Shown here: positions 5,318 through 49,646 of the stretch, one piece after another
Position numbering within the stretch: position 1 is the stretch's first letter
Layout of the letters: each line of letters opens with the position of its first letter
The notes under the pieces: generated by a model
Seen by the model: the letters and a program-made list of their open reading frames with translations, nothing else
Database searches by the model: none
Told to the model about the DNA's origin: nothing
IMG/VR virus record: IMGVR_UViG_3300032245_001746
Coordinates: 62,001 to 126,000 of that record
Strand: one strand, 5' to 3'
Length of the DNA stretch: 64,000 nt
Program-made: the position numbers and the translations under genes

Positions 5318-5328
5318 ATAATTTCTTT

Positions 5329-6963: not shown

Positions 6964-6973
6964 TTAAAATACC

Positions 6974-16500: not shown

Positions 16501-16909
16501 GAAAGTCTGCAAGTTGCCATATTGACATACTTGCTTCTGAATAATTATTTGAATAATTTGAATTTTTAAAATGTCTAACTTTTATTTCAATTGTATCATT
16601 AGGTGATACATCAATAATTGTTTCATTATTGTTGTTTTCAACAATAATGGTTTCCCAATAAGTATTATTTATGTTATATTGTAGTTCAGTGCCCAAATTA
16701 GATTGATTAGTCCAATTAACAATAATGCCTAAGTTTTCTAAACTTAAATTTAAATTTTTCACATCAGGAATGTCATTATTTAAGTTTGTTGTTTGATATG
16801 GGTATAATTGATATCTACAAACTGTTATTACAGAAACCCAAGCGTTTTTTAAATATACCCATTTAATTTCTCTTATAACATTGTTTTTATCCAAACATCT
16901 ATATGTCAT
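13571..16909 (-). CDS. Large beta-rich protein, probable virion/adhesion protein; paralog of 24628-27558
   Basis: Shares long blocks with the paralog, e.g. YFTNMYSGLFVMVAK and MRYKNPISKWTYY.WD. Confidence 0.6.
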   Translation of the reverse strand: MTYRCLDKNNVIREIKWVYLKNAWVSVITVCRYQLYPYQTTNLNNDIPDVKNLNLSLENLGIIVNWTNQSNLGTELQYNINNTYWETIIVENNNNETIIDVSPNDTIEIKVRHFKNSNYSNNYSEASMSIWQLADFQLYGLTENVNDNLSEANTLYAINYGDEFYTNKLKTFTNENVYETNHAIAFHNGLIYRMIRKNRDSYQGYEFEYINTETLEIINIPLTSNDFNCSVKTMCYYPPTGVFLLATDCSFYQIETNGTVTQLSGANNSIRGMYYYNNVLVGLFDNNYQGPIQIYVLDPTNGLLLNESPLFEMTIDGYNLLEGHSLTEHNGNLHAILYATNEQGYSGMILAKIESTSESNTYTSGFDDDNHGWVGTQWSRDASDIRTNFISGQTNILTQNFNVGENSVLSFSYNFSSNVYGDLFVKSNGTTLETVNCYGTGSGDVSVNLTTGEHLITLELQGVDTEGIFAITTISVTNVITQTNQYSFISQLSINYRALTSININEENQLIIQQSNNDLSALNYLSDEGIVGDLIVDTKVCCNIEEYQSVAFNPIDRHIYHLCMRAVDTSDYDETNLVFEKLNLDTLEVTPIDLSGSIKVNGTEFQTESYIDDGGDDMYDRGNFLGTNRSNNGFIEYTHTQQTEYDWEAFNQIADGVITDGHSYEDEYDYFGPGSRYFTNMYSGLFVMVAKDIDITSFSIYGQIGADGSGLAAEDVITLNNGHTGYFKKIYNSGDPSVNHLIIIPTKSGVMQEISYSTYQDFHKISNLSGVDYIYYLLFSSIDNGDNINNEITSEQARTIGNSFLNTITGPSMTIENILSNLNSSVTNITENIPNMFAFTDYFDGMASEFINYKPGLNQPHCMTYYKNNKFLVASNEGLHSITNDGVATSISDQFHWAECRGLAFVGDRLFATFSQIPELAEINPSTGEIINQLENKKGPTVFVDNNQIYNFAIRALASTGNALILMSYDNDHTYTLAYLDNLEPDGDSLLYATSIGQFRASGGLTLQKFGKNPIPGNYFIGYNEEHTGILVPSNYNEEEITLTADQIEVQWHEDYMANERYTDWNDIVVQEVVQLNEGGNFTVVIDKPVNNFKVRMRYKNPISKWTYYVWD

Positions 16910-20601: not shown

Positions 20602-20683
20602 GCGTTGATATGGCAAGTGGATAAAGCCGGGTGACTGTAAATCACTTCTTAATTGTTCGGGGGTTCGAATCCCTCTCAACGCA
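20602..20683 (+). tRNA. tRNA-Tyr(GTA)
   Basis: GCGTTGA/TCAACGC; GGTGA-CTGTAAA-TCACT; T-loop TTCGAAT. Confidence 0.9.
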
Positions 20684-20689
20684 CTTTAT

Positions 20690-20776
20690 AGATGGTTTTA
20701 CTATTGGCTAGGTTAACTTAGTTGGAAACTAAGAAGGCGTTAATTCGCTTTACAAGTTCGATTCTTGTACCATCTG
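20690..20776 (+). tRNA. tRNA-Ser(GGA)
   Basis: AGATGGT/ACCATCT, G73; CTTAG-TTGGAAA-CTAAG; long variable arm. Confidence 0.85.
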
Positions 20777-20784
20777 TTTTATTT

Positions 20785-20866
20785 AGAGTCGCTTCAATGT
20801 GGGTATTGGAGAAGTCTGTAAAACTTCTGCCCTATGGGCAAAACAGTTCGATTCTGTACGACTCTA
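20785..20866 (+). tRNA. tRNA-Tyr(GTA)
   Basis: AGAGTCG/CGACTCT; GAAGT-CTGTAAA-ACTTC; variable arm TGCCC/GGGCA. Confidence 0.85.
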
Positions 20867-20880
20867 CTTGTTGTTATTTT

Positions 20881-20970
20881 AGATGGGTAGACCTATTGGT
20901 AGGTCAGATTATTTGCTAAATAATTAGGGCGGGTCAAACCGTCTTGCAAGTTCGATTCTTGTCCCATCTG
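20881..20970 (+). tRNA. tRNA-Ser(GCT)
   Basis: AGATGGG/CCCATCT, G73; ATTAT-TTGCTAA-ATAAT; long variable arm. Confidence 0.88.
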
Positions 20971-20990
20971 CTTGGTTTTTTATTTTATAT

Positions 20991-21081
20991 AGATTGGTAA
21001 CTGGACAGGCGTGCCAGCATTGTTTTGAAAACAATTGGAGCCATTGAGAAATGGCTTGGGATTCGATTTCTCACCTCTCTG
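20991..21081 (+). tRNA. tRNA-Ser(TGA), two acceptor-stem mismatches
   Basis: ATTGT-TTTGAAA-ACAAT; long variable arm; AGATTGG/CCTCTCT, G73. Confidence 0.75.
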
Positions 21082-21101
21082 CTTTGTTTATTTTATAATA
21101 T

Positions 21102-21177
21102 GGACGGTGAGCTAGTGTGGTCATTTAAGCGGAAATTTGAAAGATTTCAGAACTCAGTTCGATTCTGAGACCGTCCA
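21102..21177 (+). tRNA. tRNA-Phe(GAA)
   Basis: GGACGGT/ACCGTCC; GAAAT-TTGAAAG-ATTTC; CTCAG-TTCGATT-CTGAG. Confidence 0.85.
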
Positions 21178-21247
21178 CTTTTAAAGAATTTATAAAATTC
21201 GAACATTATTTTTCTTAAAATTAAATACGCTATTACTGTAATAGTGT

Positions 21248-21964
21248 ATGAGCAAAATAATTTATACAAAAGAAGTGTTAGAAAAAGCAGTAAAAGAAGC
21301 AAGTTACTTAACTGAAGTATTTAAAATACTTAATGCAAGACAAGGAGGAAATACTTATCAAAGAATAAAAATATTAATTAAAGAGTATAAAATAGACACA
21401 TCTCATTTTTTGAATGGAAAATATAAAGGATTTTTAAAATCTGGAATTGCTAATAAAAAATGTCATTTAAAAATCCTTGTAAATGATAAATCTAGAAATA
21501 GAAGAGAAAGTAGTTATTTATTAAAACGTGCATTAATAGAAAGTGGTCGAATTCATGTTTGTGAATGCTGTGGTTTGAAACCTGAATGGAATGGTAAAGA
21601 ATTAACACTTCAAGTTGATCATATAGATGGAAATTGGTTAGATAATAGAAAAGAAAATTTAAGATTTTTATGTCCTAATTGTCATACTCAAACAAAAACA
21701 TTTGGAAATCAAAAGGAACAAAAAAAATGTGAAAATTGTAACATGAAAATAGGAAGAAAATCTCGATGGTGTAAGCGTTGTTTTCCATTATTTGTTTTTA
21801 TAAATAAAAGAAAAGTAAAAGACAGACCAGAATTACATGTATTAAACCAAGAAGTAAAAGAACTTGGGTATGTAGGAACTGGTAGAAAATATGGCGTAAG
21901 TGATAATGCTATTAAAAAATGGATTAAAACAGAAACTAAAAAATTAAATATTACAAATAAATAG
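21248..21964 (+). CDS. HNH homing endonuclease inside the tRNA array
   Basis: CECCG..WNGKELTLQVDHIDGNWLDNRKENLRFLCPNCH; C-terminal HTH (GRKYGVSDNAIKKW). Confidence 0.9.
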   Translation: MSKIIYTKEVLEKAVKEASYLTEVFKILNARQGGNTYQRIKILIKEYKIDTSHFLNGKYKGFLKSGIANKKCHLKILVNDKSRNRRESSYLLKRALIESGRIHVCECCGLKPEWNGKELTLQVDHIDGNWLDNRKENLRFLCPNCHTQTKTFGNQKEQKKCENCNMKIGRKSRWCKRCFPLFVFINKRKVKDRPELHVLNQEVKELGYVGTGRKYGVSDNAIKKWIKTETKKLNITNK

Positions 21965-21982
21965 TAAATATAGTGTTTATAT

Positions 21983-22065
21983 GTTCGCGTGATGAAATTT
22001 GGGATACATGATGGTCTAAGAAGCCATTGCCGTAAGGCTTGCAGGTTTGATTTTTGTCGCGAACA
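21983..22065 (+). tRNA. tRNA-Leu(AAG)
   Basis: GTTCGCG/CGCGAAC; ATGGT-CTAAGAA-GCCAT; variable arm GCC-GTAA-GGC; weak T-arm. Confidence 0.75.
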
Positions 22066-22079
22066 CTTGTTGTTTTTAT

Positions 22080-22154
22080 GCTGTAGTACGCAAATAGGCA
22101 AAGCGGCAATACTTAAAATATTGTGATTCTGTCGTTCGACTCCGATCTACAGTA
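22080..22154 (+). tRNA. tRNA-Leu(TAA), short variable arm, imperfect T-stem
   Basis: GCTGTAG/CTACAGT; CAATA-CTTAAAA-TATTG. Confidence 0.7.
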
Positions 22155-22168
22155 CTTGTTATTTTTAT

Positions 22169-22242
22169 GCTCATGTGATGCAATTGGCAGACATTTCTCG
22201 TTTAAACCGAGGATCTTACAAGTTCAAGTCTTGTCATGAGCA
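22169..22242 (+). tRNA. tRNA-Leu(TAA), short variable arm
   Basis: GCTCATG/CATGAGC; TCTCG-TTTAAAC-CGAGG; ACAAG-TTCAAGT-CTTGT. Confidence 0.8.
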
Positions 22243-22251
22243 CTTTTATAT

Positions 22252-22329
22252 GCTTACGTGATGCAATTTGGTAGACATCTTTCGCTTAAAACGAAAGTTT
22301 TTTTGTAGGTTCGAGTCCTATCGTAAGCA
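22252..22329 (+). tRNA. tRNA-Leu(TAA), short variable arm
   Basis: GCTTACG/CGTAAGC; TTTCG-CTTAAAA-CGAAA; GTAGG-TTCGAGT-CCTAT. Confidence 0.85.
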
Positions 22330-22333
22330 CTAT

Positions 22334-22406
22334 CGGTCAATAACAATGATGGTTCATGTAGTCGTCTGAAGAACGACAAATCCCAGATCGTAACTGGGTT
22401 GACCGG
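22334..22406 (+). tRNA. tRNA-Phe(GAA), atypical T-loop and G73
   Basis: CGGTCAA/TTGACCG; GTCGT-CTGAAGA-ACGAC; CCCAG-ATCGTAA-CTGGG. Confidence 0.7.
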
Positions 22407-22415
22407 CTTTTATAT

Positions 22416-22499
22416 GTCCATGTGGTGAAATTTGGCAGCCACGCCAGCCTAAGAAACTGGTTCCTTAATGGAGTGTAGGTTCAAATCCTATCATGGACA
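22416..22499 (+). tRNA. tRNA-Leu(AAG)
   Basis: GTCCATG/CATGGAC; CCAGC-CTAAGAA-ACTGG; variable arm; GTAGG-TTCAAAT-CCTAT. Confidence 0.8.
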
Positions 22500-22513
22500 C
22501 TTGTTATTTTTAT

Positions 22514-22596
22514 GCCCATGTGATTGAAATTGGTAAACTTGGAAGTTTTAGAAACTTTCGCCTTCGGGCTTGCAGGTTCAACCCCTGTCGTGGGCA
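22514..22596 (+). tRNA. tRNA-Leu(TAG)
   Basis: GCCCATG/CGTGGGC; GAAGT-TTTAGAA-ACTTT; long variable arm. Confidence 0.85.
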
Positions 22597-22616
22597 CTTA
22601 TTATATTATTAAAAAT

Positions 22617-22690
22617 GGCTCAGTAGGCAACGGAAGACCACTTTTACTCAAAATAAAAGATGATTGTGAGTTCGACTCTCACCTGAGTTA
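22617..22690 (+). tRNA. tRNA-Leu(CAA), short variable arm
   Basis: GGCTCAG/CTGAGTT; TTTTA-CTCAAAA-TAAAA; GTGAG-TTCGACT-CTCAC. Confidence 0.8.
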
Positions 22691-22794
22691 CTTATATACA
22701 ATTATACTGTGAACAAATAGCAAATCTTACTAGGTTATTCTAGTGCTCATCAAACGTTGAAATAAATAATCTAAGTTATAATTGTATATTTTTT

Positions 22795-22879
22795 GGATTA
22801 GATTGAAAGCGGCTATTCTACTAAATTTCGAAAATTTAGAACTATTTTTAGTTTGCGAGTTCGACTCTTGCCTAATCCG
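22795..22879 (+). tRNA. tRNA-Ser(CGA)
   Basis: GGATTAG/CTAATCC, G73; TAAAT-TTCGAAA-ATTTA; long variable arm. Confidence 0.8.
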
Positions 22880-22913
22880 TTTTTAAAATTTAAGTTATTA
22901 TAATAAATATATT

Positions 22914-24627: not shown

Positions 24628-27558
24628 TTAATCCCAAGTATAATAAGTCCATTTACTAATTGGATTTTTATAACGCATTCTTAATTTAAAGTTAGATGTT
24701 GGTTTATCTACAATAACCCACCACCATTCTGTATCTTGTTGTATTACTTCTAATACATTAACGTTTTCCCAACCTATATAACTTTGATCAGCGTTTCCAT
24801 CAGAATTCCATTGAACTTCTAAATTTTCTTTATTTGGCTCTTCACTTGTTGGTCCAACTTCTATAAGAGTTGTTGTTTCATCATAACTCCAATACCATGC
24901 ACCTTCAGGACGTTCTTTTCCAAATAGTTCAGCAACAAGTCCACCAACAATTTTAAACGTTCTAATACTAGTTGCGTAAATTATATTAAATTCGTCAGGT
25001 TGTAAATTATCAATAACTGCTAGTGTATAATTTTGATTTCCATCATAAGAAATAATATACAAATCATTTCCTACTGCTGCCATACTTTTTGTTGAATAAT
25101 GATTTATTGAATTATTATCAACCCAAACTATTGGTCCCTTTTTATCTTGTACTTCATTTATAATTTCTCCAGTATTTGGGTCTAATTCTGCTATATTTGC
25201 AACACTATCATAACCTGCATACAATCTGTTTTCAATGAAAGCTAGTGATGAGCAATCATAAAAATGCCATGCATTATTTAAGTAATTTATTACACCATTT
25301 TTATTAATAGAATAAAATCCTCCATTATTTCCAACAATTAAAAAAGAATTGTTATTTTTATAAACCATACATCTAGGATTTTGTAATCCTGGTCTATTTC
25401 CAACAGGAAAATTTTGTTCTCCATTATTTTGATCAACAAATAGATAAATATTTTCTATATTTGATGTTATTTGATTTACATTCGCATTTAATGCCGATAA
25501 AGCATCAGATGCAGTATTAGAATTAAATATAACCGACAAGAAACTATTTCCAATTATTTGTGCCAAATTTTCTGAAACTTCAGATCCATCATAAGGAGAA
25601 AAAGTTGAAAACAATAAATAATAGATATGATTAGTATTTTCTAAGCCTGATATTTCATGAAAATCTTGATTTGTATCTGCAACTATATTTGATAATATAC
25701 CTGTTCTGGTTGGAACAATAATAAGATGGTTTACTGATGAACTATTTGTTCCATATGTTTTTTTAAAATAACCAGTATATCCACCATTTAGTGAAATTGA
25801 ATGTTGATTCACAATTCCATTACCATCTGCTCCCAAATCACCAGATATGGTAAAACTATTAATATTAATATTTTTAGCCACCATAACAAATAAACCTGAA
25901 TACATATTTGTAAAATATTCTGAATTTTCTCCAAAATATAAAGTTCCATCTGCTACAACTCCATCAGCAATCTCTGTAAATTCACTACTTTCTTGTTGAG
26001 TATGAGTATATTGTATAAATCCATTTTCGATAATGTTGGTATTTAAAAAATTACCAGTATCAAACATATTATTTCCACCATCACTTATATAAGAAGTAGT
26101 AGAATGTAAAACTCCTTTTATATACACATCACCCGAAATGTTTATTTGTGTTATTTCTAATGTATTTGGGTTGAATTTTTCAAAATTCAATTCCATTTGA
26201 TCTTCTATATCTAATTCTTGGTCATAACCTTCTACTCTCATTGAAGCATGATAAATATTTCTATCAATAGGATTAAATGCAATACATGGATATCTTTCTC
26301 TATTACAACACATACTTGTATTTATTATTTCATTTCCCACTTGACCAGAGTCACTTAAAAAGTATAAAGTGTTATTTTGAATATTTTGAACAATTAATTT
26401 TGATTCTCCATTTACTATTGCTGATGAAATTAGATTATATCCATCAGATAATGTTGAAATAAATGAAACATTTTCTTGAACAAGATCTATAGTAATTAAA
26501 ATAAGACCATCATATTCTTCTGGCTCAACGGCACTTAAAATCGCATAAAATAAGCCATTATAATATTCTAAGCTATGTATATCGGTTAGAGTATATTGAT
26601 TTATAGTAGAGTTAGCCCAATGAAGAGTTGTACGATCTCCGTTTGATGTATCAACTTCATATAAACCAATAGTTCCATTATCATTATAAAGAGTGAAATA
26701 AGCTTCGTTGTTGCTAGTAAAACCTTTATTTGAAGTATTATTATTTGAACTAAGTCTTGTAACTGTTCCATTTGTTTCTAATTGAAAAAACCCACAATTA
26801 GAACTTACAAAAAAATTATTATTTTGTAAGTTAAAACACATTGAGGCACCGTTACATAAAGTATATTCACCAGAATAGTTTAATGGAATTGGATTTACTT
26901 GATTTGTTATTAAATTAATATGTTCAAATTCAATTCCAGAATAATCATCTCTCGTACGATAAACAAGTCTATAAATTGAGCTAATATTAGCTGGGACAGA
27001 GCCTAAAGCATATTCATCTTCAAATACATTTTCTTCTAAAAATGTTATTATTTTATTAGGTGTAAAATCTTGGTTTTCTGAATTAAAATTATATAATGTA
27101 TTACCTTTTAAATCAGGTAATCCAGTGCCAGATAATCCATATAAAGTAAAATCAATTAATTCCCAAGTAGTTATTGATGCTGTTGTATAATTTTTTGAAA
27201 ATCTATCATTATTATCTATAAATCTGACTTTAACTTCTATTGTAGAATTAGGTTGTAAATCATAAATAATAGTATTTTGATTTTTTTCAATTATACTTAC
27301 ATTCCATTCGCCTTCTGATAATTTAATAGATATTTCAGTAAAATATGATAAATTATTTATCCAAGAAATAATTAAACCTAAATTTTCAAATTCTAAATTT
27401 AATCCTGTAACATCTGGAATATCATCAACTAATTTGATTACATTTGTTATTGGGTATAATTTATAAGTACAAACAGTTATAACTGGTATCCATGCATCTT
27501 TACGATAAATCCAAGTTATATTTCTAACTATTTTATTATCTTTGCACTTAAAAGTCAT
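24628..27558 (-). CDS. Large beta-rich protein; paralog of 13571-16909
   Basis: Collinear similarity from N- to C-terminus. Confidence 0.6.
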   Translation of the reverse strand: MTFKCKDNKIVRNITWIYRKDAWIPVITVCTYKLYPITNVIKLVDDIPDVTGLNLEFENLGLIISWINNLSYFTEISIKLSEGEWNVSIIEKNQNTIIYDLQPNSTIEVKVRFIDNNDRFSKNYTTASITTWELIDFTLYGLSGTGLPDLKGNTLYNFNSENQDFTPNKIITFLEENVFEDEYALGSVPANISSIYRLVYRTRDDYSGIEFEHINLITNQVNPIPLNYSGEYTLCNGASMCFNLQNNNFFVSSNCGFFQLETNGTVTRLSSNNNTSNKGFTSNNEAYFTLYNDNGTIGLYEVDTSNGDRTTLHWANSTINQYTLTDIHSLEYYNGLFYAILSAVEPEEYDGLILITIDLVQENVSFISTLSDGYNLISSAIVNGESKLIVQNIQNNTLYFLSDSGQVGNEIINTSMCCNRERYPCIAFNPIDRNIYHASMRVEGYDQELDIEDQMELNFEKFNPNTLEITQINISGDVYIKGVLHSTTSYISDGGNNMFDTGNFLNTNIIENGFIQYTHTQQESSEFTEIADGVVADGTLYFGENSEYFTNMYSGLFVMVAKNININSFTISGDLGADGNGIVNQHSISLNGGYTGYFKKTYGTNSSSVNHLIIVPTRTGILSNIVADTNQDFHEISGLENTNHIYYLLFSTFSPYDGSEVSENLAQIIGNSFLSVIFNSNTASDALSALNANVNQITSNIENIYLFVDQNNGEQNFPVGNRPGLQNPRCMVYKNNNSFLIVGNNGGFYSINKNGVINYLNNAWHFYDCSSLAFIENRLYAGYDSVANIAELDPNTGEIINEVQDKKGPIVWVDNNSINHYSTKSMAAVGNDLYIISYDGNQNYTLAVIDNLQPDEFNIIYATSIRTFKIVGGLVAELFGKERPEGAWYWSYDETTTLIEVGPTSEEPNKENLEVQWNSDGNADQSYIGWENVNVLEVIQQDTEWWWVIVDKPTSNFKLRMRYKNPISKWTYYTWD

Positions 27559-32811: not shown

Positions 32812-33060
32812 ATGATGAAAAAATATTTTATAATTGTTTTATTTGTTCTCTTTTTTGTTGGATGTGCAAAAACAAATTTTATAATATTAGAAGTTCATCC
32901 AACATCTATTTATTTAGAAAATGAAGATGTAATAATTATAGAATCTTACATAATAATAGAACGTGATGGAGTTAAATACAAACATATTTGCAATACACAA
33001 GGATTATCTTCTGGAATGGATATCAAATTAAATATCAATAACTTGGAAGAAATTAAATGA
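32812..33060 (+). CDS. Putative lipoprotein
   Basis: KK + hydrophobic stretch + FVGC lipobox. Confidence 0.6.
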   Translation: MMKKYFIIVLFVLFFVGCAKTNFIILEVHPTSIYLENEDVIIIESYIIIERDGVKYKHICNTQGLSSGMDIKLNINNLEEIK

Positions 33061-34265
33061 TTAGAAGAAATTTTTTAAAAAGTAGTTTATTGTCTGTTCC
33101 TTTTTTGAATTTTTTAAATTCATTAAAAGAAAATGAATCTAATTTAAAGAAAAATAATAAATCGTGTGTTTTAATTTGGCTGGGTGGTGGTCCTTCAACT
33201 ATAGATATGTTTGATCTTAAACCTCATTCTAAAAATGCAGGTGAATTTAAACCTATTCAAACGAATGTTAATGGAATTGAAATATGTGAACATTTGCCAA
33301 AATTAGCTACTACATTTAATGATCTATCAATTATTCGTTCAATGAGTACTAGAGAAGCTGATCATATGAGGGGCAGTTATTATCTGCATACTGGTTTTAT
33401 TCCAACACCATCAGTTGTTCATCCTACTGCTGGGTCTGTTTTTAGCTTTGAATCTAAAACAGAATTAGATATTCCTTCTTTTATATCAATTAATCCAACA
33501 TCATTTAAATCTGGATATCTTGGTGTTAAATATGATCCATTTGTAGTATTAGAAGATGGAAGTATACCCAATTTAAACAAAAATTCTAACTTAAATAAAA
33601 AACTCTCTTTCTTAAATGAAATTGAAAATAATTTTATAAATTCTAACCGTGGCGATATGCCAAATTCTCACAAAGAAATATATTCTAATACTATTAATTT
33701 GATTAATTCAAATCAATCAAAAGTTTTTAATACTTTTGAAGAAAATGAAGATACAAAAATTAAATATGGTAATTCTTCAATTGGAAAAAGTCTTTTATTA
33801 ACTAGAAGATTAATAATGGCTGGTGTTCCATTTGTTGAAGTTAATTATAATGGCTGGGATATGCATTCTGATATTTTTAATTCATTGAAATTTAAATTAT
33901 CAGAATTTGATCAATCTTTACATACATTTATTCAAGATTTAAAATCTTTGAATATGTATAAAAATACAACTATTGTTTGCATGGGTGAATTTGGAAGAAC
34001 TCCAAAAATCAATCAAGATTCAGGAAGAGATCATTGGGCTAATGCATGGTCTATTTTGCTTGGTGGCGGTTCATTAAAAAATGGACAAGTTTTAGGAAAA
34101 ACATCAAAAGATGGTACACTAGTTGAAGAAAGTCCATATAATGCTGGCAATGTTTGGTCTACTGTTTCTAAATCGATGGGAATTGAGATTAATACTCATA
34201 CATCAAAAAATGGTCGTCCAATGAAAATGTTTAATGGTGACAATTTTATTGAATCATTATTTTAA
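33057..34265 (+). CDS. DUF1501 family protein with Tat signal
   Basis: RRNFLK; IWLGGGPSTIDMFDLKP; GWDMH; MGEFGRTPKIN..GRDHW. Confidence 0.92.
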   Translation: MIRRNFLKSSLLSVPFLNFLNSLKENESNLKKNNKSCVLIWLGGGPSTIDMFDLKPHSKNAGEFKPIQTNVNGIEICEHLPKLATTFNDLSIIRSMSTREADHMRGSYYLHTGFIPTPSVVHPTAGSVFSFESKTELDIPSFISINPTSFKSGYLGVKYDPFVVLEDGSIPNLNKNSNLNKKLSFLNEIENNFINSNRGDMPNSHKEIYSNTINLINSNQSKVFNTFEENEDTKIKYGNSSIGKSLLLTRRLIMAGVPFVEVNYNGWDMHSDIFNSLKFKLSEFDQSLHTFIQDLKSLNMYKNTTIVCMGEFGRTPKINQDSGRDHWANAWSILLGGGSLKNGQVLGKTSKDGTLVEESPYNAGNVWSTVSKSMGIEINTHTSKNGRPMKMFNGDNFIESLF

Positions 34266-34278
34266 TAAGGAATTTTAA

Positions 34279-34431
34279 ATGTCAGGACAAAATGGTAAAG
34301 GTGATTCTCCAAGACCAAAGTCTATTTCAAATGAACAATTCCAAAATAATTGGAATAATATTTTTAAAAAAAACAAAAAAATAAATAAAACAAAACATGA
34401 TAGAATCATAAAAAATAATAAAGAAATTTAA
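34279..34431 (+). CDS. 50-aa hypothetical protein
   Basis: Manual translation MSGQNGKGDSPRPKSISNEQFQNNWNNIFKK...; AAGGA RBS. Confidence 0.65.
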   Translation: MSGQNGKGDSPRPKSISNEQFQNNWNNIFKKNKKINKTKHDRIIKNNKEI

Positions 34432-34433
34432 TT

Positions 34434-34847
34434 ATGAATATTTTATATTGTAAAAATAGAAAAGCTTTTCATGATTATGAAATTATAGAAACCTATGAGG
34501 CTGGTATTGTTTTGTTTGGATCTGAAGTTAAAGAAATAAAAAATAACAAAAGTTCTTTAGATGGATCTTTTGCTATTATTAACGATAATGTTGTAAAACT
34601 TTTAAATTTCAAAATGGGCAATTTAGAAAATAGAGAGATAATTTTACTTTTAAATAAAAAAGAAATTTATAATATACAAAAAGAATTAGTTAAAGGTTAT
34701 TCGTTAATACCACTTGTTGTATATTATACAAATAATTATATTAAATTAGAAATTGCTCTTTGTAAAGGTTTAAAGAAATTTGATAAAAGACAAGTTTTAA
34801 AAGATAAAGATTTAATTAAATCGGAATCATCTAAAATTAAACTTTAA
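34434..34847 (+). CDS. smpB: SsrA-binding protein SmpB
   Basis: NRKAFHDYEIIETYEAGIVLFGSEVK, LLLNKKEI, KG.KKFDKR. Confidence 0.92.
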   Translation: MNILYCKNRKAFHDYEIIETYEAGIVLFGSEVKEIKNNKSSLDGSFAIINDNVVKLLNFKMGNLENREIILLLNKKEIYNIQKELVKGYSLIPLVVYYTNNYIKLEIALCKGLKKFDKRQVLKDKDLIKSESSKIKL

Positions 34848-35005
34848 TAAGTATAAATATATTTAAACTTAATTAAAGGATTAATTATGAGTAATTATAA
34901 AAAATTTGAATCAATTATTAAAGGATTAAAGTTGGGAGTCATAGGAATTATTTTAATTAAAGTAATTAAAGTAATAATATGTGCTTTATTTGGTTTTTGT
35001 GTAAT

Positions 35006-35197
35006 TTAAGACTTCTTCTTTTTTCGTTTCTTGCGTTTTTTTGCAATTTTCCTAGAATAAGCCAAGTAAGGATTTGATTGTCCACCATAAAGTGGCGGAT
35101 AATTTCCTATACCTCCATATCCAATAGGATATACGCCTGTTATATCTTCTAAACCTTCACCTATTTTATCTTTTAACCATTCTTGAAAACTTTTCAT
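35006..35197 (-). CDS. Small basic protein with capsid-targeting-like N-terminus
   Basis: MKSFQEWL; poly-Lys/Arg C-terminus; TAAATA upstream. Confidence 0.7.
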   Translation of the reverse strand: MKSFQEWLKDKIGEGLEDITGVYPIGYGGIGNYPPLYGGQSNPYLAYSRKIAKKRKKRKKKKS

Positions 35198-35228
35198 TAC
35201 TTATTTACTTTTTTAAGGACTTTTTTTA

Positions 35229-35960
35229 ATGTTTAATTCTGAATTAATTTTGAATGCTTTTTCTAAATTTGCTTTTTTAGAAATGTATAGCTTTTTTTGG
35301 TTTGTTTATATAGTAGGATTTGTTTGGTTGTTAGCCAAACTTGTAGATGAAGCATATTACACAAGTTCGTTTTTTACTTTACTTTTTGGGGTTTTAGCTT
35401 TAGACTTTTTAGGCAACACTCCAATATTATATTTTATACTTCAGTATAAATATTTTCTGTTTTTATTGGTTCCAATTTATTTAATTGCTGGATCTGTTTG
35501 GGGCTTATTAAAATGGCGATTTTATATCTCTGATTGTTTTAATAAATTTATAGCCTCTAAAGAAGAATATTGTGAAAAAAATGGTATTAATGAAATTTCT
35601 AATTCTGAATTTTTATCTAAATCATATGATTACGTCTCTTACCAGAAAGAAATACCTAGTTATATAAATAGAATTGCTGGGACAGCGTCCAGAGGAAAAA
35701 CAGAATACACATATGTTGTCAGACCTTATGCTTATAAACACAAATCTTTAATTTTGTCTTGGATGATTTATTGGCCATTTTCTCTCGTTTCGACTTTGTT
35801 GTACGACTCAGTTGCTGCTACATTTAACTATATGAAAGTAAAATTTATATCAATTAGAAATAGTTTAATGCAAAGAATGGAAATTGTTTCTATCAATAAA
35901 TTCAAGTCAATTCAAGATGAAATTGATAATGCTAAACAAGAATCCAAAAAATTTGAATAA
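35229..35960 (+). CDS. Membrane protein
   Basis: Several hydrophobic segments; WMIYWPFS. Confidence 0.7.
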   Translation: MFNSELILNAFSKFAFLEMYSFFWFVYIVGFVWLLAKLVDEAYYTSSFFTLLFGVLALDFLGNTPILYFILQYKYFLFLLVPIYLIAGSVWGLLKWRFYISDCFNKFIASKEEYCEKNGINEISNSEFLSKSYDYVSYQKEIPSYINRIAGTASRGKTEYTYVVRPYAYKHKSLILSWMIYWPFSLVSTLLYDSVAATFNYMKVKFISIRNSLMQRMEIVSINKFKSIQDEIDNAKQESKKFE

Positions 35961-43399: not shown

Positions 43400-45019
43400 A
43401 TGAGTTCAATTAGTGTAATAAAGAAAAATGGTTCAAAAGAAGTTTTTGATATAGAAAAAATTCACAAAGTAGTATCATGGTCAGTAAATGGATTGTCAAA
43501 TGTAAGCCAATCAGATATAGAAATTAATGCAAAATTAAACATAATTGATGGAATTAAAACAGAACAAATTCATTCTGTTTTAATTGACTCTGCAGCTAAT
43601 TTAATTAATGAAGAAAATCCTGATTATCAATATGTTGCTGGACGATTGTTGAATTATCAAATAAGAAAAAATGTTTGGGGTGGGAAAAATGCTCCAAAAT
43701 TGATTGATTTAATTAAAAAAAATATTGATTTAAAATTTTATGAACCAAAACTTTTAGAGTGGTATTCTGCTGAAGAAATCAATAAAATTGATGAGTTCAT
43801 CAATCATGATCAAGACTTGCACTATACTTACTGTTCTGTAAAACAATTATGTGATAAATATCTTGTTAAAAATCAACACACAAATGAATTATTTGAAACT
43901 CCGCAATTCAGATACATCGTTGCAGCAATGACTTTGTTTAGAAATTATAGTAAAAAAACAAGATTAAGTATCATAAAAAGATCTTATAACTATTTTAGTA
44001 AATTTAAGATCAATTTAGCAACGCCTCAATTAGCTGGACTAGGAACGAATAATAATTCGTATGCTTCGTGTTGTTTAATTGAAATGCTTGATGATAGAAA
44101 AAGTATTAATGCAACTAATCATGCTGTTGCAAATGCAACATGTGCTGGTTATGGCATTGGCGTAAATTATGGTAGAATGAGAGGCATTGGATCTTCTATT
44201 AAAAATGGATTAATCATTCATCCTGGAGTTGTTCCATTTCTTAAAATAACAGAAGCTGAAACTAAAGCTTGGCAAAAAAATGGTTTGCGTGGCGGCAGCG
44301 CTACTGTAAATTTTCCAATTTGGCATTCTGAAATTGAAACTATTGTTCAGTTGAAAAATGCAACTACTGGAACTAATGATAGTAGAGTTTTTAATTTAGA
44401 TTATGCTATTGGTTTGTCTAAATTGTTTTATGAAAGATTTTTGAAAAATGAAGATATCACATTATTCTCGCCAGATGAATGTGGTGATTTATATGATGCT
44501 TTTGGATTAGATTCTTTTGATGAATTATATGTGAAATACGAAAACAACAAAAAGATAAAAAATAAGAAAAAAGTAAATGCAAGAGAATTGTTTTCATTAT
44601 TAGTAAAAGAAAGACTTGAATCTGGGCGTATTTATATTTTAAATGTTGATAATGCCAACAAGTATTCTTCTTGGATTGGTAAAGTTAATATGTCTAATCT
44701 TTGCTTATCTGGAGACACTGAGGTTCACATATCTATTAATAATAATTTAATGACTATTTCTTTGAAAGAATGTATTGATTTACTTAAAGATGGTAAAAAT
44801 ATTGATATTTTATCAAAAAATATAAAAACAGATAATATAGAATTTAAAAAAATATTAGCTGGAGAATTAACAAGATTTAATTCTGAAGTCATTAAGGTAG
44901 AAGATGTTGAAACTGGTAAATACATAATATGCACACCAGATCATAAAATATATACAAAAAATAGAGGATATGTAGAAGCGGAAAAACTGAATCAAGATGA
45001 TATCTTAGATTTTTGTTGA
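43400..45019 (+). CDS. nrdA: Ribonucleotide reductase alpha, N-terminal part + split intein N-half (44702-45016)
   Basis: ATP cone, ETPQ, ASCC, LRGG, SNL then CLSGDT...CTPDH. Confidence 0.93.
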   Translation: MSSISVIKKNGSKEVFDIEKIHKVVSWSVNGLSNVSQSDIEINAKLNIIDGIKTEQIHSVLIDSAANLINEENPDYQYVAGRLLNYQIRKNVWGGKNAPKLIDLIKKNIDLKFYEPKLLEWYSAEEINKIDEFINHDQDLHYTYCSVKQLCDKYLVKNQHTNELFETPQFRYIVAAMTLFRNYSKKTRLSIIKRSYNYFSKFKINLATPQLAGLGTNNNSYASCCLIEMLDDRKSINATNHAVANATCAGYGIGVNYGRMRGIGSSIKNGLIIHPGVVPFLKITEAETKAWQKNGLRGGSATVNFPIWHSEIETIVQLKNATTGTNDSRVFNLDYAIGLSKLFYERFLKNEDITLFSPDECGDLYDAFGLDSFDELYVKYENNKKIKNKKKVNARELFSLLVKERLESGRIYILNVDNANKYSSWIGKVNMSNLCLSGDTEVHISINNNLMTISLKECIDLLKDGKNIDILSKNIKTDNIEFKKILAGELTRFNSEVIKVEDVETGKYIICTPDHKIYTKNRGYVEAEKLNQDDILDFC

Positions 45020-45050
45020 TAAAATGTAATACTTCGCTCATATATAATGT

Positions 45051-45965
45051 ATGAAAAATTACATTATATATGAGCACAAATTTAAAACATCAAAAAAAAG
45101 TTACATAGGGTATACTTCATTATCTATTTTTGAAAGATTACATAAACATTATATAAATGCCATGAGTGGATTAAATACTAAATTTTATAGAGCTATTAGA
45201 AAATGCGGCATCTCTGATATTGAGTCTAATATTTTATTTTTAACAAATGATATAAATATTGCAAAAGAAAAGGAAAAGGAATTTATTCAAATTAAAGATA
45301 CGTTTAAAAATGGATATAACATGACTTTAGGAGGTGATGGCGGGGATTGTACGTTGTATATGACAAAAAAACAAAAGAAAGCATATTTTGAAAAAAAGAG
45401 AATAAGTGCTACTGGAATTAATAATCCTAAATATTCTGGGTATACAGATGAAGAAATTATTTTAAAAGCAGTGGATTATTTTTTAGAAAATAAAAAATTA
45501 ACAAGATTAGCTTGGTTTAAATTTTGCAAAAAAGAAGGATATCCAGTTAATTATTCAAAATTCAGATTTAATGGAAAAAAATATGAAGGATTTGTTGAAA
45601 ATTTAAAAATTAAATTAAAAGAATTAAATATAAATTTTAAAGAAGATCAATTTTTTATATCTAAAAAAGAAAGATATAGCGGAAAGGTTTTTTCTAAAAT
45701 TAGTGATGATGAAATTTTAAAACATGCAATTAAATATTATAAAGAAAATTTAATTTTTGTAAAATCTAGATGGTTTCAATACTGTAAATTAAATGGTTTG
45801 CCTCAAATTTATTCTAAAAATAGATTTGGAGGATTAAAGTATGATGGTTTAATTAATTGTTTAAAAGAAGAATTTAGAAAAACAAATACAGATTTTGTTT
45901 ATAAGAAATTAGTAAATCAATTTGATAAGGAAAAAATAAATGTTAAAAATAACAAAAATGAATAA
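45051..45965 (+). CDS. Free-standing GIY-YIG homing endonuclease
   Basis: YIIY..SYIGYT..R..H, E, NGYNMTLGG; repeated C-terminal module. Confidence 0.88.
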   Translation: MKNYIIYEHKFKTSKKSYIGYTSLSIFERLHKHYINAMSGLNTKFYRAIRKCGISDIESNILFLTNDINIAKEKEKEFIQIKDTFKNGYNMTLGGDGGDCTLYMTKKQKKAYFEKKRISATGINNPKYSGYTDEEIILKAVDYFLENKKLTRLAWFKFCKKEGYPVNYSKFRFNGKKYEGFVENLKIKLKELNINFKEDQFFISKKERYSGKVFSKISDDEILKHAIKYYKENLIFVKSRWFQYCKLNGLPQIYSKNRFGGLKYDGLINCLKEEFRKTNTDFVYKKLVNQFDKEKINVKNNKNE

Positions 45966-46983
45966 AGAAAATGTTTATGATATTACTGTAGAAGATAATC
46001 ATAATTTTTATGCAAACGATATTTTGGTTTCAAATTGCATGGAAATTTTACAAAATATAGAATCGTTGAAAGATATAGATGATCCAAATTCTGAAATTGG
46101 TGTTTGTGTTCTTTCTGCAATTAACTGGCTTGAAATTTCTTCTGAAGAAGAAATGGAAAAAGTATGTGATGTTGTTGTAAGAATGCTTGATGAAATTATT
46201 GATATACAAGATTATTTTGATTTAGCTGCTAAAAATTTCTGTCAAAATAAAAGAAGTTTGGGTATTGGCGTTACTAATTTGGCTGCATTTCTTGCTAAAA
46301 ATAAACTTAAATACACAGATGAAGAAGCTATTGAATTAGTTGATGAATGGATGGAAAAACAACAATATTATCTTATTAAATCATCTATTAATTTAGCTAA
46401 AGAAAAAGGAAAATGTTCCAAATTCAACACATCAAAATATTCAAACGGATGGTTGCCAATAGATAAAGACATTAATGTTGCTAAAAGAAAATATTCAATG
46501 GATTGGGAACAATTAAGGGCAGATATTAAAGAATTTGGTTTAAGACATACAACATTTACAGCAGAAATGCCAGTTGAAAGTTCTTCGCTTTGTCAGAACA
46601 CAACAAACGGGGTGGAACCAGCACGAGCACTTTTAACATTTAAGAGTTCTAAAAAATCAAGTATTCCTTTTTTGGTTCCAAATGTAAAATCTTGTGGAGA
46701 TCACTATCAGTTGGCATATGATATGGAAAACAACATTGGCTATTTGAATGTGTGTAATGCAATTCAAAAATGGATGGATATGGGAATGTCTGTTAATCAA
46801 TATTTTAATCCATCAAATTATGAAGATAATAAAATACCATATTCACAAATAATTAAAGAATTAATTCATTTTTGGAAAAATGGTGGTAAAAGTTTTTATT
46901 ATTTAAATTCTGAAGACGGCAATTCTCATTTCAAAAAAGAAGAAAAATCAAGTGGTTGTGAATCTGGAGCATGTTCATTGTAA
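45940..46983 (+). CDS. nrdA: Split intein C-half (32 aa) + ribonucleotide reductase alpha C-terminal part
   Basis: VYDITVEDNHNFYANDILVSN then CMEI; CVLSAIN; MPVESSS; FYY; CESGAC. Confidence 0.93.
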   Translation: MLKITKMNKENVYDITVEDNHNFYANDILVSNCMEILQNIESLKDIDDPNSEIGVCVLSAINWLEISSEEEMEKVCDVVVRMLDEIIDIQDYFDLAAKNFCQNKRSLGIGVTNLAAFLAKNKLKYTDEEAIELVDEWMEKQQYYLIKSSINLAKEKGKCSKFNTSKYSNGWLPIDKDINVAKRKYSMDWEQLRADIKEFGLRHTTFTAEMPVESSSLCQNTTNGVEPARALLTFKSSKKSSIPFLVPNVKSCGDHYQLAYDMENNIGYLNVCNAIQKWMDMGMSVNQYFNPSNYEDNKIPYSQIIKELIHFWKNGGKSFYYLNSEDGNSHFKKEEKSSGCESGACSL

Positions 46984-46992
46984 AGGAAAATT

Positions 46993-48051
46993 ATGCAAAC
47001 TGTATTAAATAAAAAAAATGTGTCTGTAGAAGATAGAATAATGTTTCTAGGACCAGATTTATCTCTTCAAAGATATGATCAATTCAAATACCCAAAGTTT
47101 TTTGAGCTTTGGGAAATGCAAGAAAATTATAGATGGAGACCTCAAAGAATAGATCTTTCTAAAGATAGAACAGATTATGAAAAATTAACTGATACTGAAC
47201 GATTTATATTTGAATCTAATATTAAATGGCAAACTATGACTGATAGTATGTTAAGTCGTTCTATTCATGAATTATCACAATATGTAACAAATCCTGAATT
47301 AGAATTATGCATGGGTACTTGGGCTTCAATGGAACAAATGCATTCTTTTAGTTATACTCATATTTTTAAAAATGTGACTAAAAATGCTACTTTGTTTTTT
47401 GATTCTATCTTAGAAGATGAAGAAATTGTAAAAAGAGCTTATGAAATTTCATCATCTTATGATGCTTTATTAGGAAATCCAGAAGATATAAAACAAAATA
47501 TATTTGATGTTGTTCTTTGTACTAACACGACAGAAGGTATTTCTTTTTACTCTTCATTCATTTGTTCATTCTTTTTTGGTAAAAAAGGATTAATGGAAGG
47601 ATCTGCTAAGATTATTGGCGAAATAGCAAGAGATGAAAATCTTCATGTTGCAATTACTCAAAATATAATTAAAAATTGGAAAAACAAACCAGAAGAAGGC
47701 TTTCAAGATATTTTGAATAAAAATGAAGATAAAGTATATGAAATATATAGATTAGCTGCAGAAAATGAGAAAAAATGGGCAACTTATTTGTTTTCAAAAG
47801 GTTCATTATTAGGATTGAATGAAGAAATACTTCATCAATATATAGAATGGTTAACCAACACAAGACTAGCAGGAATTGGTTATAAAAAAATATTTGAACA
47901 AAAGAAGAATCCGGTTTCTGGATGGTCTGATCGTTATTTTGATAGCTCGAAAGTGCAAGTTGCTCCTCAAGAAACAGAAGTAGAATCATATTTAACTGGC
48001 AGTGCAAACACATCATTAAAAGATGAAGATTTTGCTTCAATTGAATTGTAG
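46993..48051 (+). CDS. nrdB: Ribonucleotide reductase class Ia beta subunit
   Basis: W.P, DS, EQMHSFSY, EGISFY, RDENLH, QVAPQETE. Confidence 0.93.
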   Translation: MQTVLNKKNVSVEDRIMFLGPDLSLQRYDQFKYPKFFELWEMQENYRWRPQRIDLSKDRTDYEKLTDTERFIFESNIKWQTMTDSMLSRSIHELSQYVTNPELELCMGTWASMEQMHSFSYTHIFKNVTKNATLFFDSILEDEEIVKRAYEISSSYDALLGNPEDIKQNIFDVVLCTNTTEGISFYSSFICSFFFGKKGLMEGSAKIIGEIARDENLHVAITQNIIKNWKNKPEEGFQDILNKNEDKVYEIYRLAAENEKKWATYLFSKGSLLGLNEEILHQYIEWLTNTRLAGIGYKKIFEQKKNPVSGWSDRYFDSSKVQVAPQETEVESYLTGSANTSLKDEDFASIEL

Positions 48052-48062
48052 AAAGAATATTT

Positions 48063-49646
48063 ATGGCTAAGTTTATTTTTGTTGTTGGTGGTGTTTATTC
48101 CGGTACAGGCAAAGGCGTTGCTTCTGCATCTATTGGGTTTTTATTAAAAGAACGTAATTTAAAAGTTCAGATGTTGAAATTAGATCCTTATCTTAATGTA
48201 AATGCTGGAATTATACGCCCATCAGATCATGGAGAAGTTTATGTTTGTGACGATGGGTCAGAAATTGATTTAGATGCAGGTACTTATTATAGAATCGCAA
48301 ATGAAGAAACATCAAAAGATAGCATCTGTACATCTGGAACACTTTATAAAGAATTAATTTTCGATCAAGAAAATGGAAAATATCTTGGTCAAACATTACA
48401 AATAACTCCACACATGACAGAAAAAATAACTTCAAAACTTTTAAATGTAGAAAAAGATAATGATGTTGTAATTGTAGAAATTGGTGGCACAGTAGGCGAT
48501 AGTGAATCATTTGCTTTTTTTGAAACTATAAGACAATTTAAACAAAATAAAGATTGTATGATAATAATGGTAGCACCCATTATATGGGCAGACACTATTA
48601 AAGAATTTAAAACAAAACCATTACAAAATTCCGTTAAAGAATTACAAAAATGTGGTCTTTTTCCAGACATTCTCTTGTGTAGAAGTAATTTTAAACTTCC
48701 TAATTCTATTTTGGAAAAAACATCATCTATGACTGGCATACCTCTTGAAATGGTATTTAGTTGTCCTGATGTTTCTTCTTTATATGATGTTCCAATAGAA
48801 TTTTATAATTTACATATTGATGATATTATTGTAGATAGATTTCGACTTAAAAGGAATGTTTGTAAAATACATTCTTATAAAGAATTAATTGATAAAAGCA
48901 AGAAATTTGAAAAATATACAAATATTGCAGTGGTTTGTAAGTATGATAATTCTGAAGCTTATTTATCTTTAAAAGAAGCTATTCATCATGCTGCCATTCA
49001 TAATGATTGTAAAGCAAATATTTATTTTATAAATTCTGATTTTTTTGAAAATAAGAATCAATTACAAGAATTAAATAAATATAATGCTGTAATTGTACCT
49101 GGAGGTTTTGATTATCGTGGAGTAGAAGGTAAAATTAATGCAATTAAGCATTGTAGAGAAAATAAAATTCCTTTTTTAGGAATATGTTTAGGTTTACAAT
49201 GTGCTGTAATAGAATTTGCGAGAAACATTTGTGGTATTAAAGATGCTAATAGTTTAGAATTTGAAAAAGATTGTAAAAATCCTGTTATTAATTATGTTCT
49301 TGGACAAAAAGATATTCAACAAATGTCAGGAACAATGAGATTGGGAGCTTATAATTGTAAATTACAGACAAACTCTTTAGCTAATATTTCTTATAATAAT
49401 ACTCTAATTAGTGAAAGACACAGACATAGATATGAGGTAAATTCTGAATACAAACCTATTTTAGAAAAAAATGGATTTATAGTTTCTGGAGTCAATCCAG
49501 AAACTGGATTAATTGAAATAATGGAATTGGATACAAAAATACATCCATTTTTTATAGGAATTCAAGCACATCCAGAATTTAAGTCTAGATTATTAAATCC
49601 ATCTCCTTTATTTGTTTCTTTAATAAAAGAAAGTTTGAAAAAATGA
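48063..49646 (+). CDS. pyrG: CTP synthase
   Basis: GGVYSGTGKG, KLDPYLN, EIGGTVGD, KTKP, GICLG, RHRHRYE, HPEF. Confidence 0.95.
   Translation: MAKFIFVVGGVYSGTGKGVASASIGFLLKERNLKVQMLKLDPYLNVNAGIIRPSDHGEVYVCDDGSEIDLDAGTYYRIANEETSKDSICTSGTLYKELIFDQENGKYLGQTLQITPHMTEKITSKLLNVEKDNDVVIVEIGGTVGDSESFAFFETIRQFKQNKDCMIIMVAPIIWADTIKEFKTKPLQNSVKELQKCGLFPDILLCRSNFKLPNSILEKTSSMTGIPLEMVFSCPDVSSLYDVPIEFYNLHIDDIIVDRFRLKRNVCKIHSYKELIDKSKKFEKYTNIAVVCKYDNSEAYLSLKEAIHHAAIHNDCKANIYFINSDFFENKNQLQELNKYNAVIVPGGFDYRGVEGKINAIKHCRENKIPFLGICLGLQCAVIEFARNICGIKDANSLEFEKDCKNPVINYVLGQKDIQQMSGTMRLGAYNCKLQTNSLANISYNNTLISERHRHRYEVNSEYKPILEKNGFIVSGVNPETGLIEIMELDTKIHPFFIGIQAHPEFKSRLLNPSPLFVSLIKESLKK

Follow-up and report, generated by a model that had tools for sequence, protein, structure and literature searches.

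A fractured nrdA gene in a jumbo myophage, with a candidate split intein at the catalytic cysteine and a GIY-YIG endonuclease gene between its halves

Results

Organisation of the split nrdA locus

We analysed a 64,000-nucleotide stretch of phage DNA (the window; positions 62,001 to 126,000 of IMG/VR virus record IMGVR_UViG_3300032245_001746) in which nrdA, the gene for the large subunit of class Ia ribonucleotide reductase (RNR), lies in two open reading frames (ORFs) with a free-standing endonuclease gene between them (Table 1). The first of these ORFs ends with the N-terminal half of an intein (IntN), and the last begins with the C-terminal half (IntC). The start coordinates of the three ORFs are 2, 0 and 1 modulo 3, which places the N half of nrdA, the endonuclease and the C half in three different frames. 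The source record is linear, 319,857 bp long and 28% GC, with 20 tRNAs and a tmRNA; it is 63% complete as estimated by CheckV, and its phage genes (tail sheath, DnaB, SbcCD) identify it as that of a jumbo myophage. Coordinates are window positions unless the contig (C1) or another locus is named, and all parts of the split nrdA locus lie on the plus strand.

Table 1. Features of the split nrdA locus, in window coordinates
Feature	Position	Strand	Length	Remarks
nrdA N half ORF, IntN included	43400-45019	+	539 aa	
nrdA N-extein	43400..44701	+	434 aa	last residues ...VNMSNL; Pfam PF03477, PF00317, PF02867
IntN	44702..45019	+	105 aa	Cys1; block A CLSGDT; block B T78-P-D-H81
Hairpin	45036..45075	+		perfect 16-bp stem; arms 45036-45051 and 45060-75
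GIY-YIG homing endonuclease gene, free-standing	45051..45965	+	304 aa	
Shine-Dalgarno AAGGA for the C half	45927..45931	+		8 nt before ATG 45940, within the 3' end of the endonuclease ORF
C half ORF (IntC and C-extein)	45940-46983	+	347 aa	
IntC	45940..46035	+	32 aa	blocks F and G; ...VYDITVEDNHNFYANDILVSN; Asn32 terminal, Ser31 penultimate
nrdA C-extein	46036..46983	+	315 aa	+1 Cys first (CMEI)
nrdB (small subunit)	46993..48051	+		PF00268, E 3e-54; 9 nt 3' of the C half

The two halves together cover a class Ia NrdA. The N-extein contains the ATP-cone, the all-alpha domain and the first half of the barrel, as shown by Pfam, and the N half matched positions 4-441 of PRK09103 (NCBIfam, class Ia NrdA; E 3e-144), while the C half covers positions 435-760 of the same model. 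The sequence AAGAGGA forms a ribosome-binding site (RBS) 5' of the N-half ATG at 43400. Cys1 of the intein (codon 44702-44704) is residue Cys435 of the N half and directly follows the N-extein; IntN is terminated by TGA at 45017-19, with TAA immediately next at 45020-22. At the other end, IntC finishes with ...ILVSN (Asn codon 46033-35) and is followed by CMEI, with its Cys codon at 46036-38.

Alignment with E. coli R1 (2R1R) located the break within the enzyme. Residues 438-760 of R1 aligned with C-half residues 32-346 (E 5e-72), and C-half residue 33, the +1 Cys, fell opposite R1 residue 439. Therefore, nrdA is broken directly N-terminal to the thiyl-radical Cys. In the same alignment the C-extein retains the Cys462 equivalent (the Cys in EIGVCVLSA), the YY pair (FYY) and the C-terminal CxxxxC (CESGAC), and the junction SNL/CMEI covers the equivalents of Asn437, Cys439 and Glu441. 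We take these residue numbers to be those of E. coli R1. Thus, every domain and residue by which we judged membership of class Ia NrdA is present.

The initial annotation of this DNA, made from the sequence alone, had described an N half ending ...MSNL followed by a 105-aa IntN (CLSGDT...TPDH), a GIY-YIG ORF in a separate frame between the halves, and a C half opening with a 32-aa IntC that ends in VSN before CMEI. All three elements are present as described, with the identity of the endonuclease supported by PHROG families and by its predicted fold. The further proposal, that the gene is split at the catalytic Cys with SNL and CMEI placed for rejoining, is in keeping with the alignment of the +1 Cys with R1 residue 439.

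Intein halves: motifs, predicted docking and relatives

Both intein halves were recognised by models of intein splicing regions. IntC scored 34-38 bits with TIGR01443 (C-terminal splicing region; cut-off 15.6), and IntN scored 28.9 bits with TIGR01445 (N-terminal region; cut-off 24.5) in a six-frame search of the genome, and 23.8 bits when the whole N-half protein was used. The sequence motifs expected of a class-1 split intein are all there: Cys1 with block A, the TxxH of block B, blocks F and G, the terminal Asn and the +1 Cys. T78 and H81 of block B are, moreover, invariant in the IntN family alignment. The two halves reside on separate polypeptides, as shown by the stops after IntN and by the different reading frames, both of which recur in independent assemblies. 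Among solved structures, the NrdJ-1 intein (8UBS, 9OMB) is nearest to IntN in sequence (E 1e-20, 42/91 aligned positions identical, ~46%). IntC aligned best with the gp41-1 IntC (6QAZ), and also with solved cyanobacterial DnaE inteins.

Entered as separate chains, IntN and IntC were predicted to dock, with an ipSAE of 0.76 compared to 0.00 for the best control. Three runs shared at least 90% of contacts, and the pLDDT of the partner was at least 72. With the mark applied to such predictions, 51 of 78 solved complexes pass, as do 2 of 108 mismatched pairs. The docking score may partly reflect likeness to solved split inteins, and is no proof of binding.

Word-based searches recovered 52 protein relatives of IntN and 47 of IntC. 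Across the 48 IntC sequences (the window and the 47 hits), the motif VYDITVEDNHNFYANDILV-H/S-N followed by C is almost invariant, and the window IntC lies near this consensus. The penultimate residue of the window IntC is Ser rather than His, as had been pointed out in the initial annotation; this is a minority state, found in 7 of the 48 sequences, with His in the rest, and the Ser group includes the nearest relatives of the window. One relative (L002) has a contiguous mini-intein within a 913-aa NrdA, in which a 12-residue linker lies exactly at the split point of the window intein. Therefore, the split lies at the canonical endonuclease-insertion loop.

The endonuclease gene and its translation signals

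The product of the gene between the halves matched PHROG families of GIY-YIG homing endonucleases (phrog_5123, E 5e-12; phrog_314, E 6e-14). A PDB search with its sequence returned only a chance match to enolase. Its AlphaFold model (pLDDT 88) has residues ~1-100 that fit the I-TevI catalytic domain (1MK0) with a TM-score of 0.84, normalised to the target, and an rmsd of 2.1 Å; for 1MK0 and 1LN0 together the target-normalised TM-scores were 0.80-0.84, with probability 1.00. R29, H33, E75 and N90 are invariant in 36 relatives of the endonuclease, and Y7 and Y18-I19-G20 are nearly invariant. These four invariant positions closely match R27, H31, E75 and N90 of I-TevI.

The C-terminal half of the endonuclease is built of two tandem helical modules of ~85 aa (45411-45665 and 45666-45920), which are 39% identical to each other (E 4e-17). 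Most relatives are ~250 aa long, a length that fits a single copy of the module. We regard this half as the putative DNA-binding part; a search with the AlphaFold model gave no PDB fold match for it. Three relatives of 39-44% identity were sampled, and 3/3 also lie between nrdA halves. The endonuclease lineage therefore appears to be tied to the nrdA site.

The endonuclease ATG (45051-53) is placed at the stem-loop junction of a strong hairpin (dG -22.4 kcal/mol, z -6.6; 0/200 shuffles folded equally well), with no Shine-Dalgarno sequence 5' of it. In L005, one of the independent assemblies considered below, the untranslated 34 nt with the first hairpin arm (45017-45050) are 100% identical to the window, and the sole change in the hairpin falls in its loop. 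Comparable hairpins of unrelated sequence occupy the same place in L001 (18 bp), L003 (13 bp), L024 (16 bp) and L025 (19 bp); that of L001 buries GGAGG and AUG, and L026 has a weak hairpin only. By analogy with known systems, the hairpin probably holds translation of the endonuclease down by burying its start codon. The C half has a Shine-Dalgarno sequence of its own (Table 1), and its ORF overlaps that of the endonuclease by 26 nt (45940-45965).

Independent assemblies and selection

An assembly error at the stop (45017-19) and at the frame changes, which the initial annotation had named as a way in which its reading could fail, is rejected by independent assemblies that share the same stops and frames. 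The same gene layout is found on Logan contigs of three other runs (L005-L007). In 1461 nt aligned to the window, L005 and L006 have no indel, despite ~7% substitutions in the cassette that comprises IntN, the endonuclease gene and IntC, and the stops, the hairpin (its loop change in L005 aside) and the overlap are identical. The strain of these independent assemblies is ~90% identical to the window across the aligned region. In related N halves from other assemblies (P0001, P0002) the stop follows the same ...ILDFC, and the layout recurs in seven or more loci at a greater distance. The locus was found, whole or in part, in 20 runs from 10 studies of wastewater, riverine and freshwater samples, and four of the runs are metatranscriptomes.

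Ratios of non-synonymous to synonymous substitution rates (dN/dS) were calculated against L005. They were very low for the intein, at 0.014 for IntN and 0 for IntC, which has no non-synonymous changes. The C-extein had a dN/dS of 0.098 with a dS of 0.91. For the endonuclease, the ratio was 0.12 in the catalytic domain and 0.43 in the C-terminal half, and its reading frame is intact in every variant.

Related loci

Comparison with other loci (L008, L016 and L021 were excluded, and local N-extein comparisons used residues 1-379) revealed nrdA genes in a range of states. A fractured nrdA with a GIY-YIG gene is found in L001, which is syntenic with the window, and in L003, L024 and L026. In L003 (5001-8481) and L026 (841-4283) the intein lies one residue further along, after the Cys439 equivalent, and the C-extein starts with CEI. 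Insertion after the thiyl Cys, the site seen in L003 and L026, was reported only for NrdJ by Dassa et al. (PMC2677866). L004 (LR796208.1, an uncultured Caudovirales phage; 5001-7364) has a split intein with no endonuclease gene and a 225-nt spacer; a SegE-like GIY-YIG ORF lies ~1.1 kb downstream of this split nrdA.

The most fragmented gene, that of L025 (818-5403), is in three pieces with two endonuclease genes. Its order is NrdA-N with IntN, a GIY-YIG gene, an 83-aa ORF (IntC and a short extein), a 294-aa ORF with a faint NUMOD3 match, and a final NrdA-C piece without an intein. At the other extreme, nrdA is intact in L022 and L023, which are syntenic sister phages of the window and provide candidate empty-site alleles. 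The cassette was found in no record of the cultured-phage collection that was searched. Of the cultured phages, Pelagibacter phage HTVC008M comes nearest; its nrdA is intact, and its alignment with the window skips ~1331 nt, compared to the 1334 nt of the cassette. The order nrdA-nrdB of the window is the same in L001, L003, L005, L022 and L023.

Divergence of the cassette and of its flanks

Has the cassette moved independently of the gene that it interrupts? We addressed this by comparing the DNA of the window with that of L005. The cassette (IntN-endonuclease-IntC, 44702-46035) is 93.4% identical between the two, with a dS of 0.19-0.28, whereas the flanks (extein tail, C-extein and nrdB) are 85.0% identical (81-87% by segment), and the dS of the C-extein is 0.91 (Fisher p 2e-14 for cassette versus flank identity). 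An unbiased scan of all breakpoint pairs returned a low-divergence segment of 44702-46037 (likelihood-ratio test statistic 60), compared to intein limits of 44702-46035. This segment begins with base one of the Cys1 codon and extends two bases beyond the last intein codon; the limits of its breakpoints at 2 log-likelihood units (2-lnL) are 44694-44733 and 45997-46053.

Comparisons at the protein level also separate the intein from its host gene. The N-extein of P0002 is 81-82% identical to that of the window and its IntN is 96% identical, while P0003, P0004 and P0005 have exteins that are 78-84% identical and an IntN that is merely 55-63% identical. Beyond these proteins, conservation in the family is frequently higher for IntN than for the extein, in one case 50% versus 25%. 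In a tree of C-exteins, the window, L005 and L001 (fractured) form one clade with L022 and L023 (intact) at 99/99 support, and nrdA is thus intact in two of the five clade members. The low divergence of the cassette, breakpoints at the splice junctions and intact nrdA in sister phages together suggest that the cassette moved recently as a unit. On these comparisons, the simplest reading would be that the whole cassette was gained or replaced laterally in the recent past.

Discussion

Proposed function of the locus

The data above point to a fractured gene for the large subunit of a class Ia RNR in a jumbo myophage, whose product would be restored by split-intein trans-splicing and which harbours a homing endonuclease gene between its halves; we put the probability of this reading at roughly 85%. 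It is supported by the anatomy of the locus, by purifying selection and the retention of catalytic residues, by the docking predicted for the intein halves, by the patchy distribution among sister phages and by the step in cassette divergence.

By analogy with known systems, the nrdA halves would be translated separately from one operon as fusions, one with the IntN and the other with the IntC of a class-1 split intein. These two would associate, Cys1 and the +1 Cys would undergo acyl shifts and Asn32 would cyclise, so joining the exteins into a full-length NrdA with the sequence ...SNL-CMEI.... The +1 nucleophile would then become the active-site thiyl-radical Cys. As this nucleophile is the equivalent of Cys439, RNR activity would depend on splicing. 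With its expression limited by the hairpin, the endonuclease would cut insert-less nrdA alleles of co-infecting relatives, and repair of the break would copy the whole IntN-endonuclease-IntC cassette into the cut allele. The same analogy is our ground for proposing splicing, the activity and target of the endonuclease, and the regulatory role of the hairpin.

Several observations weigh against this interpretation. The penultimate His that is usual, but not obligatory, for class-1 inteins is absent. Ser31 stands in place of the His that assists Asn cyclisation, an exchange that is tolerated in other inteins but could slow splicing. The window copy of the endonuclease scored only 14.6 bits with PF01541 (cut-off 22.6; E 0.04), although all four of its aligned relatives matched this family (best E 8e-8), and family scans of its C-terminal half found no NUMOD, helix-turn-helix or other known DNA-binding domain. 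The window hairpin (45020-45075) lacks the T4-type late-promoter element TATAAATA, which L003 and L025 carry in their hairpin loops; the element is not enriched in the phage genome, where 45 and 42 copies were observed on the two strands compared to ~84 expected per strand. Finally, the signal of mobility comes from one DNA pair, together with the comparisons at the protein level.

Alternative explanations

Could the break in nrdA be an artefact, or a sign of decay? The window comes from a metagenome-derived, linear record that is 63% complete by CheckV, and nrdA might in truth carry a contiguous intein or none, with the stop and frame changes being errors. We give this almost no credence, as L005-L007 have the same layout, without an indel over 1461 nt in L005 and L006, as the same stop recurs in P0001 and P0002, and as at least seven distant loci, and 20 runs from 10 studies, bear the arrangement out. 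Nor is nrdA likely to any appreciable degree to be a pseudogene in two decaying fragments in a phage that uses the host RNR. An interrupted nrdA would fit such decay, as would the fact that many phages have no RNR, but the C-extein has kept a dN/dS of 0.098 at a dS of 0.91, the catalytic and radical-transfer residues are all retained, nrdB is intact and adjacent, and each nrdA half has an RBS and a start codon.

The intein halves might alternatively no longer splice, and merely hold the NrdA fragments together non-covalently. The NrdA of Aeromonas phage Aeh1 functions as two chains without splicing, and the missing penultimate His would fit such a clamp. However, Cys1, the Thr and His of block B, Asn32 and the +1 Cys are all kept, the dN/dS of the intein is close to 0, and Ser-penultimate relatives retain the same motifs. 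In addition, the intein sits in the active-site finger loop at Cys439, so that an unspliced complex would have 137 residues inserted at the radical site. We therefore consider a purely structural role very improbable. It is less far-fetched, but still unlikely, that the cassette is a fixed relic, inherited vertically with an inactive or domesticated endonuclease, and that its low divergence arose from ordinary recombination during co-infection with no homing. The divergence step was seen in a single DNA pair, its breakpoints are sharper than is usual for double-strand-break repair, in which flanking DNA is normally co-converted, and the endonuclease changes faster in its C-terminal half (dN/dS 0.43). 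Against this, the GIY-YIG catalytic residues are invariant in the 36 relatives, the catalytic domain has a dN/dS of 0.12 and frames are intact. The conserved hairpin at the start codon points to an expression that still needs restraint, and the cassette is patchy among sister phages, with the identities of intein and extein decoupled across the family.

Comparison with known systems

That fractured phage genes of this type were already known, as the initial annotation had stated, is borne out by Dassa et al. 2009 (PMC2677866), who described the fractured nrdA loci NrdA-1 to NrdA-7 in Global Ocean Sampling (GOS) metagenomes. In that study, the NrdA insertion lies directly N-terminal to the thiyl-radical Cys, with the NrdJ insertion one residue further; a hairpin was found in 15/16 endonuclease 5' regions, with TATAAATA as a late-promoter element inside 10 hairpins, and the endonuclease and IntC overlap by 6-69 bp. 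Every feature of fractured genes that we looked for is present in the window except the optional TATAAATA element. With NrdA-1 to -7, including NrdA-2, the window shares the nrdA host gene, the SNL/C site and the sizes of the intein halves (IntN ~105 aa, IntC ~33 aa). Also common to NrdA-1 to -7 and the window are a phage host, an endonuclease gene that stands free between the halves (GIY-YIG at some loci), the overlap of the endonuclease 3' end with the start of IntC and the hairpin in the endonuclease 5' region. It differs from the GOS loci in lacking TATAAATA in the hairpin, in the duplicated C-terminal module of its endonuclease and in its genome, which is that of a >320-kb AT-rich myophage from freshwater or wastewater rather than cyanophage-like.

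According to the supplementary text of Pinto 2020 (PMC7090010), in which this split intein was characterised, NrdA-2 has the site SNL/C and splices both in cis, at 75-98%, and in trans, and it showed no cross-reaction with NrdJ-1. Compared by eye with the machine-read text of that supplement, and hence approximately, the window IntN is ~47% and IntC ~66% identical to NrdA-2. NrdA-2 has a penultimate His and Asn as the +2 extein residue, where the window has Ser and Met. NrdJ-1 is of the same intein clade and likewise stems from a fractured RNR gene, but the RNR is of class II, the insertion lies one residue further and the penultimate residue is His. The comparison with known NrdA, NrdJ and gp41 split inteins that the initial annotation had proposed thus places the window IntN at ~46% identity to NrdJ-1 and ~47% to NrdA-2, with an IntC that aligns with that of gp41-1.

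Other systems share parts of the arrangement. The cyanobacterial DnaE inteins (Npu, Ssp) are class-1 inteins that occur naturally split into halves of ~100 aa (IntN) and ~35 aa (IntC), but their halves are encoded far apart in a cellular genome, there is no endonuclease gene, the host protein is another one and the sequence similarity to the window is weak. Their penultimate residue is not His either, being Ser in Npu and Ala in Ssp. The nrdA/mobE locus of phage Aeh1 (Edgell laboratory) also has nrdA as two genes of a single operon, separated by a free-standing homing endonuclease gene, the translation of which is restrained by a hairpin and the end of which overlaps the downstream half. In contrast to the window, it has no intein, its chains assemble non-covalently, mobE encodes an HNH enzyme and the break point is elsewhere. 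I-TevI of phage T4 shares the predicted catalytic fold (1MK0), with Arg, His, Glu and Asn at window endonuclease positions 29, 33, 75 and 90. However, I-TevI is encoded in a group I intron and has a DNA-binding region of zinc finger, NUMOD and helix-turn-helix, whereas the window endonuclease has two helical modules and its searches did not detect the I-TevI DNA-binding region.

Implications

The arrangement, the insertion site and the mechanism have all been known since 2009, and the window, although distinct in sequence, is in these respects an incremental addition. What it adds to them, from the comparison of two strains, is a drop in divergence that is specific to the cassette and bounded by the splice junctions. 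Two further proposals we put forward tentatively, at somewhat less than even odds. One is that the cassette is moving now, as a precisely bounded unit, among freshwater and wastewater jumbo myophages; if so, this would be population-level evidence that the composite element of a fractured gene homes whole. The other, which is separate, is that the Ser-penultimate intein is orthogonal to NrdJ-1 and NrdA-2.

Of the initial annotation, only the proposal of a candidate new orthogonal split intein found no support in these comparisons, though orthogonality is possible on the sequences at hand. The near-invariant IntC consensus urges caution, while the orthogonality of NrdA-2 and NrdJ-1 to each other favours the possibility: these two do not cross-react though they are related, and therefore relatedness alone does not predict cross-reactivity. 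To our knowledge, no tool for protein ligation is faster than the split inteins that derive from fractured phage genes (gp41-1, NrdJ-1, IMPDH-1, NrdA-2). A diverged split intein could add to orthogonal sets, especially as a natural Ser-penultimate variant with native junction residues.

The locus and its relatives show all stages of such an element: an empty site, a contiguous mini-intein, a split intein without an endonuclease gene, a split intein with one, and a gene in three pieces. Together with the divergence step, these stages offer a natural system for following the spread of composite selfish elements and the permanent breakage of genes.

Other features of the phage genome

A full-length pyrG (CTP synthase; 48063-49646) lies directly 3' of nrdB, in an order that is common to L001 and L005, and is an auxiliary nucleotide-metabolism gene of the phage group to which the window belongs. 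Five further inteins are present in the phage genome, at window 1-1108 (minus strand), C1:24232-27498, 33042-35666, 194543-197053 and 252610-254781. All five are contiguous, and the nrdA intein alone is split. Judging from their translations, we take the hosts of the five to be RecA/UvsX-like, GyrB/topoisomerase II-like, DnaE-like, portal-like and Dda/RecD-like helicase proteins; the RecA/UvsX-like gene is the one at the left edge of the window. The DnaE-like ORF (C1:33042-35666, minus strand) ends ~70 residues past its intein, and the remainder of dnaE is not in the adjacent ORFs. This may be another gene in pieces.

Two long ORFs on the minus strand of the window, 13571-16909 (1112 aa) and 24628-27558 (976 aa), had no PHROG match at E 1e-5. 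At the end of the contig (C1:319657-319857) there is a simple repeat, (AATC)n, of at least 200 bp, which is probably where the assembly stopped. The tmRNA is located at C1:29678-30043, and the window contains an array of 13 tRNAs (20602-22880; Tyr, Ser, Phe, Leu and others), several of which are duplicated.

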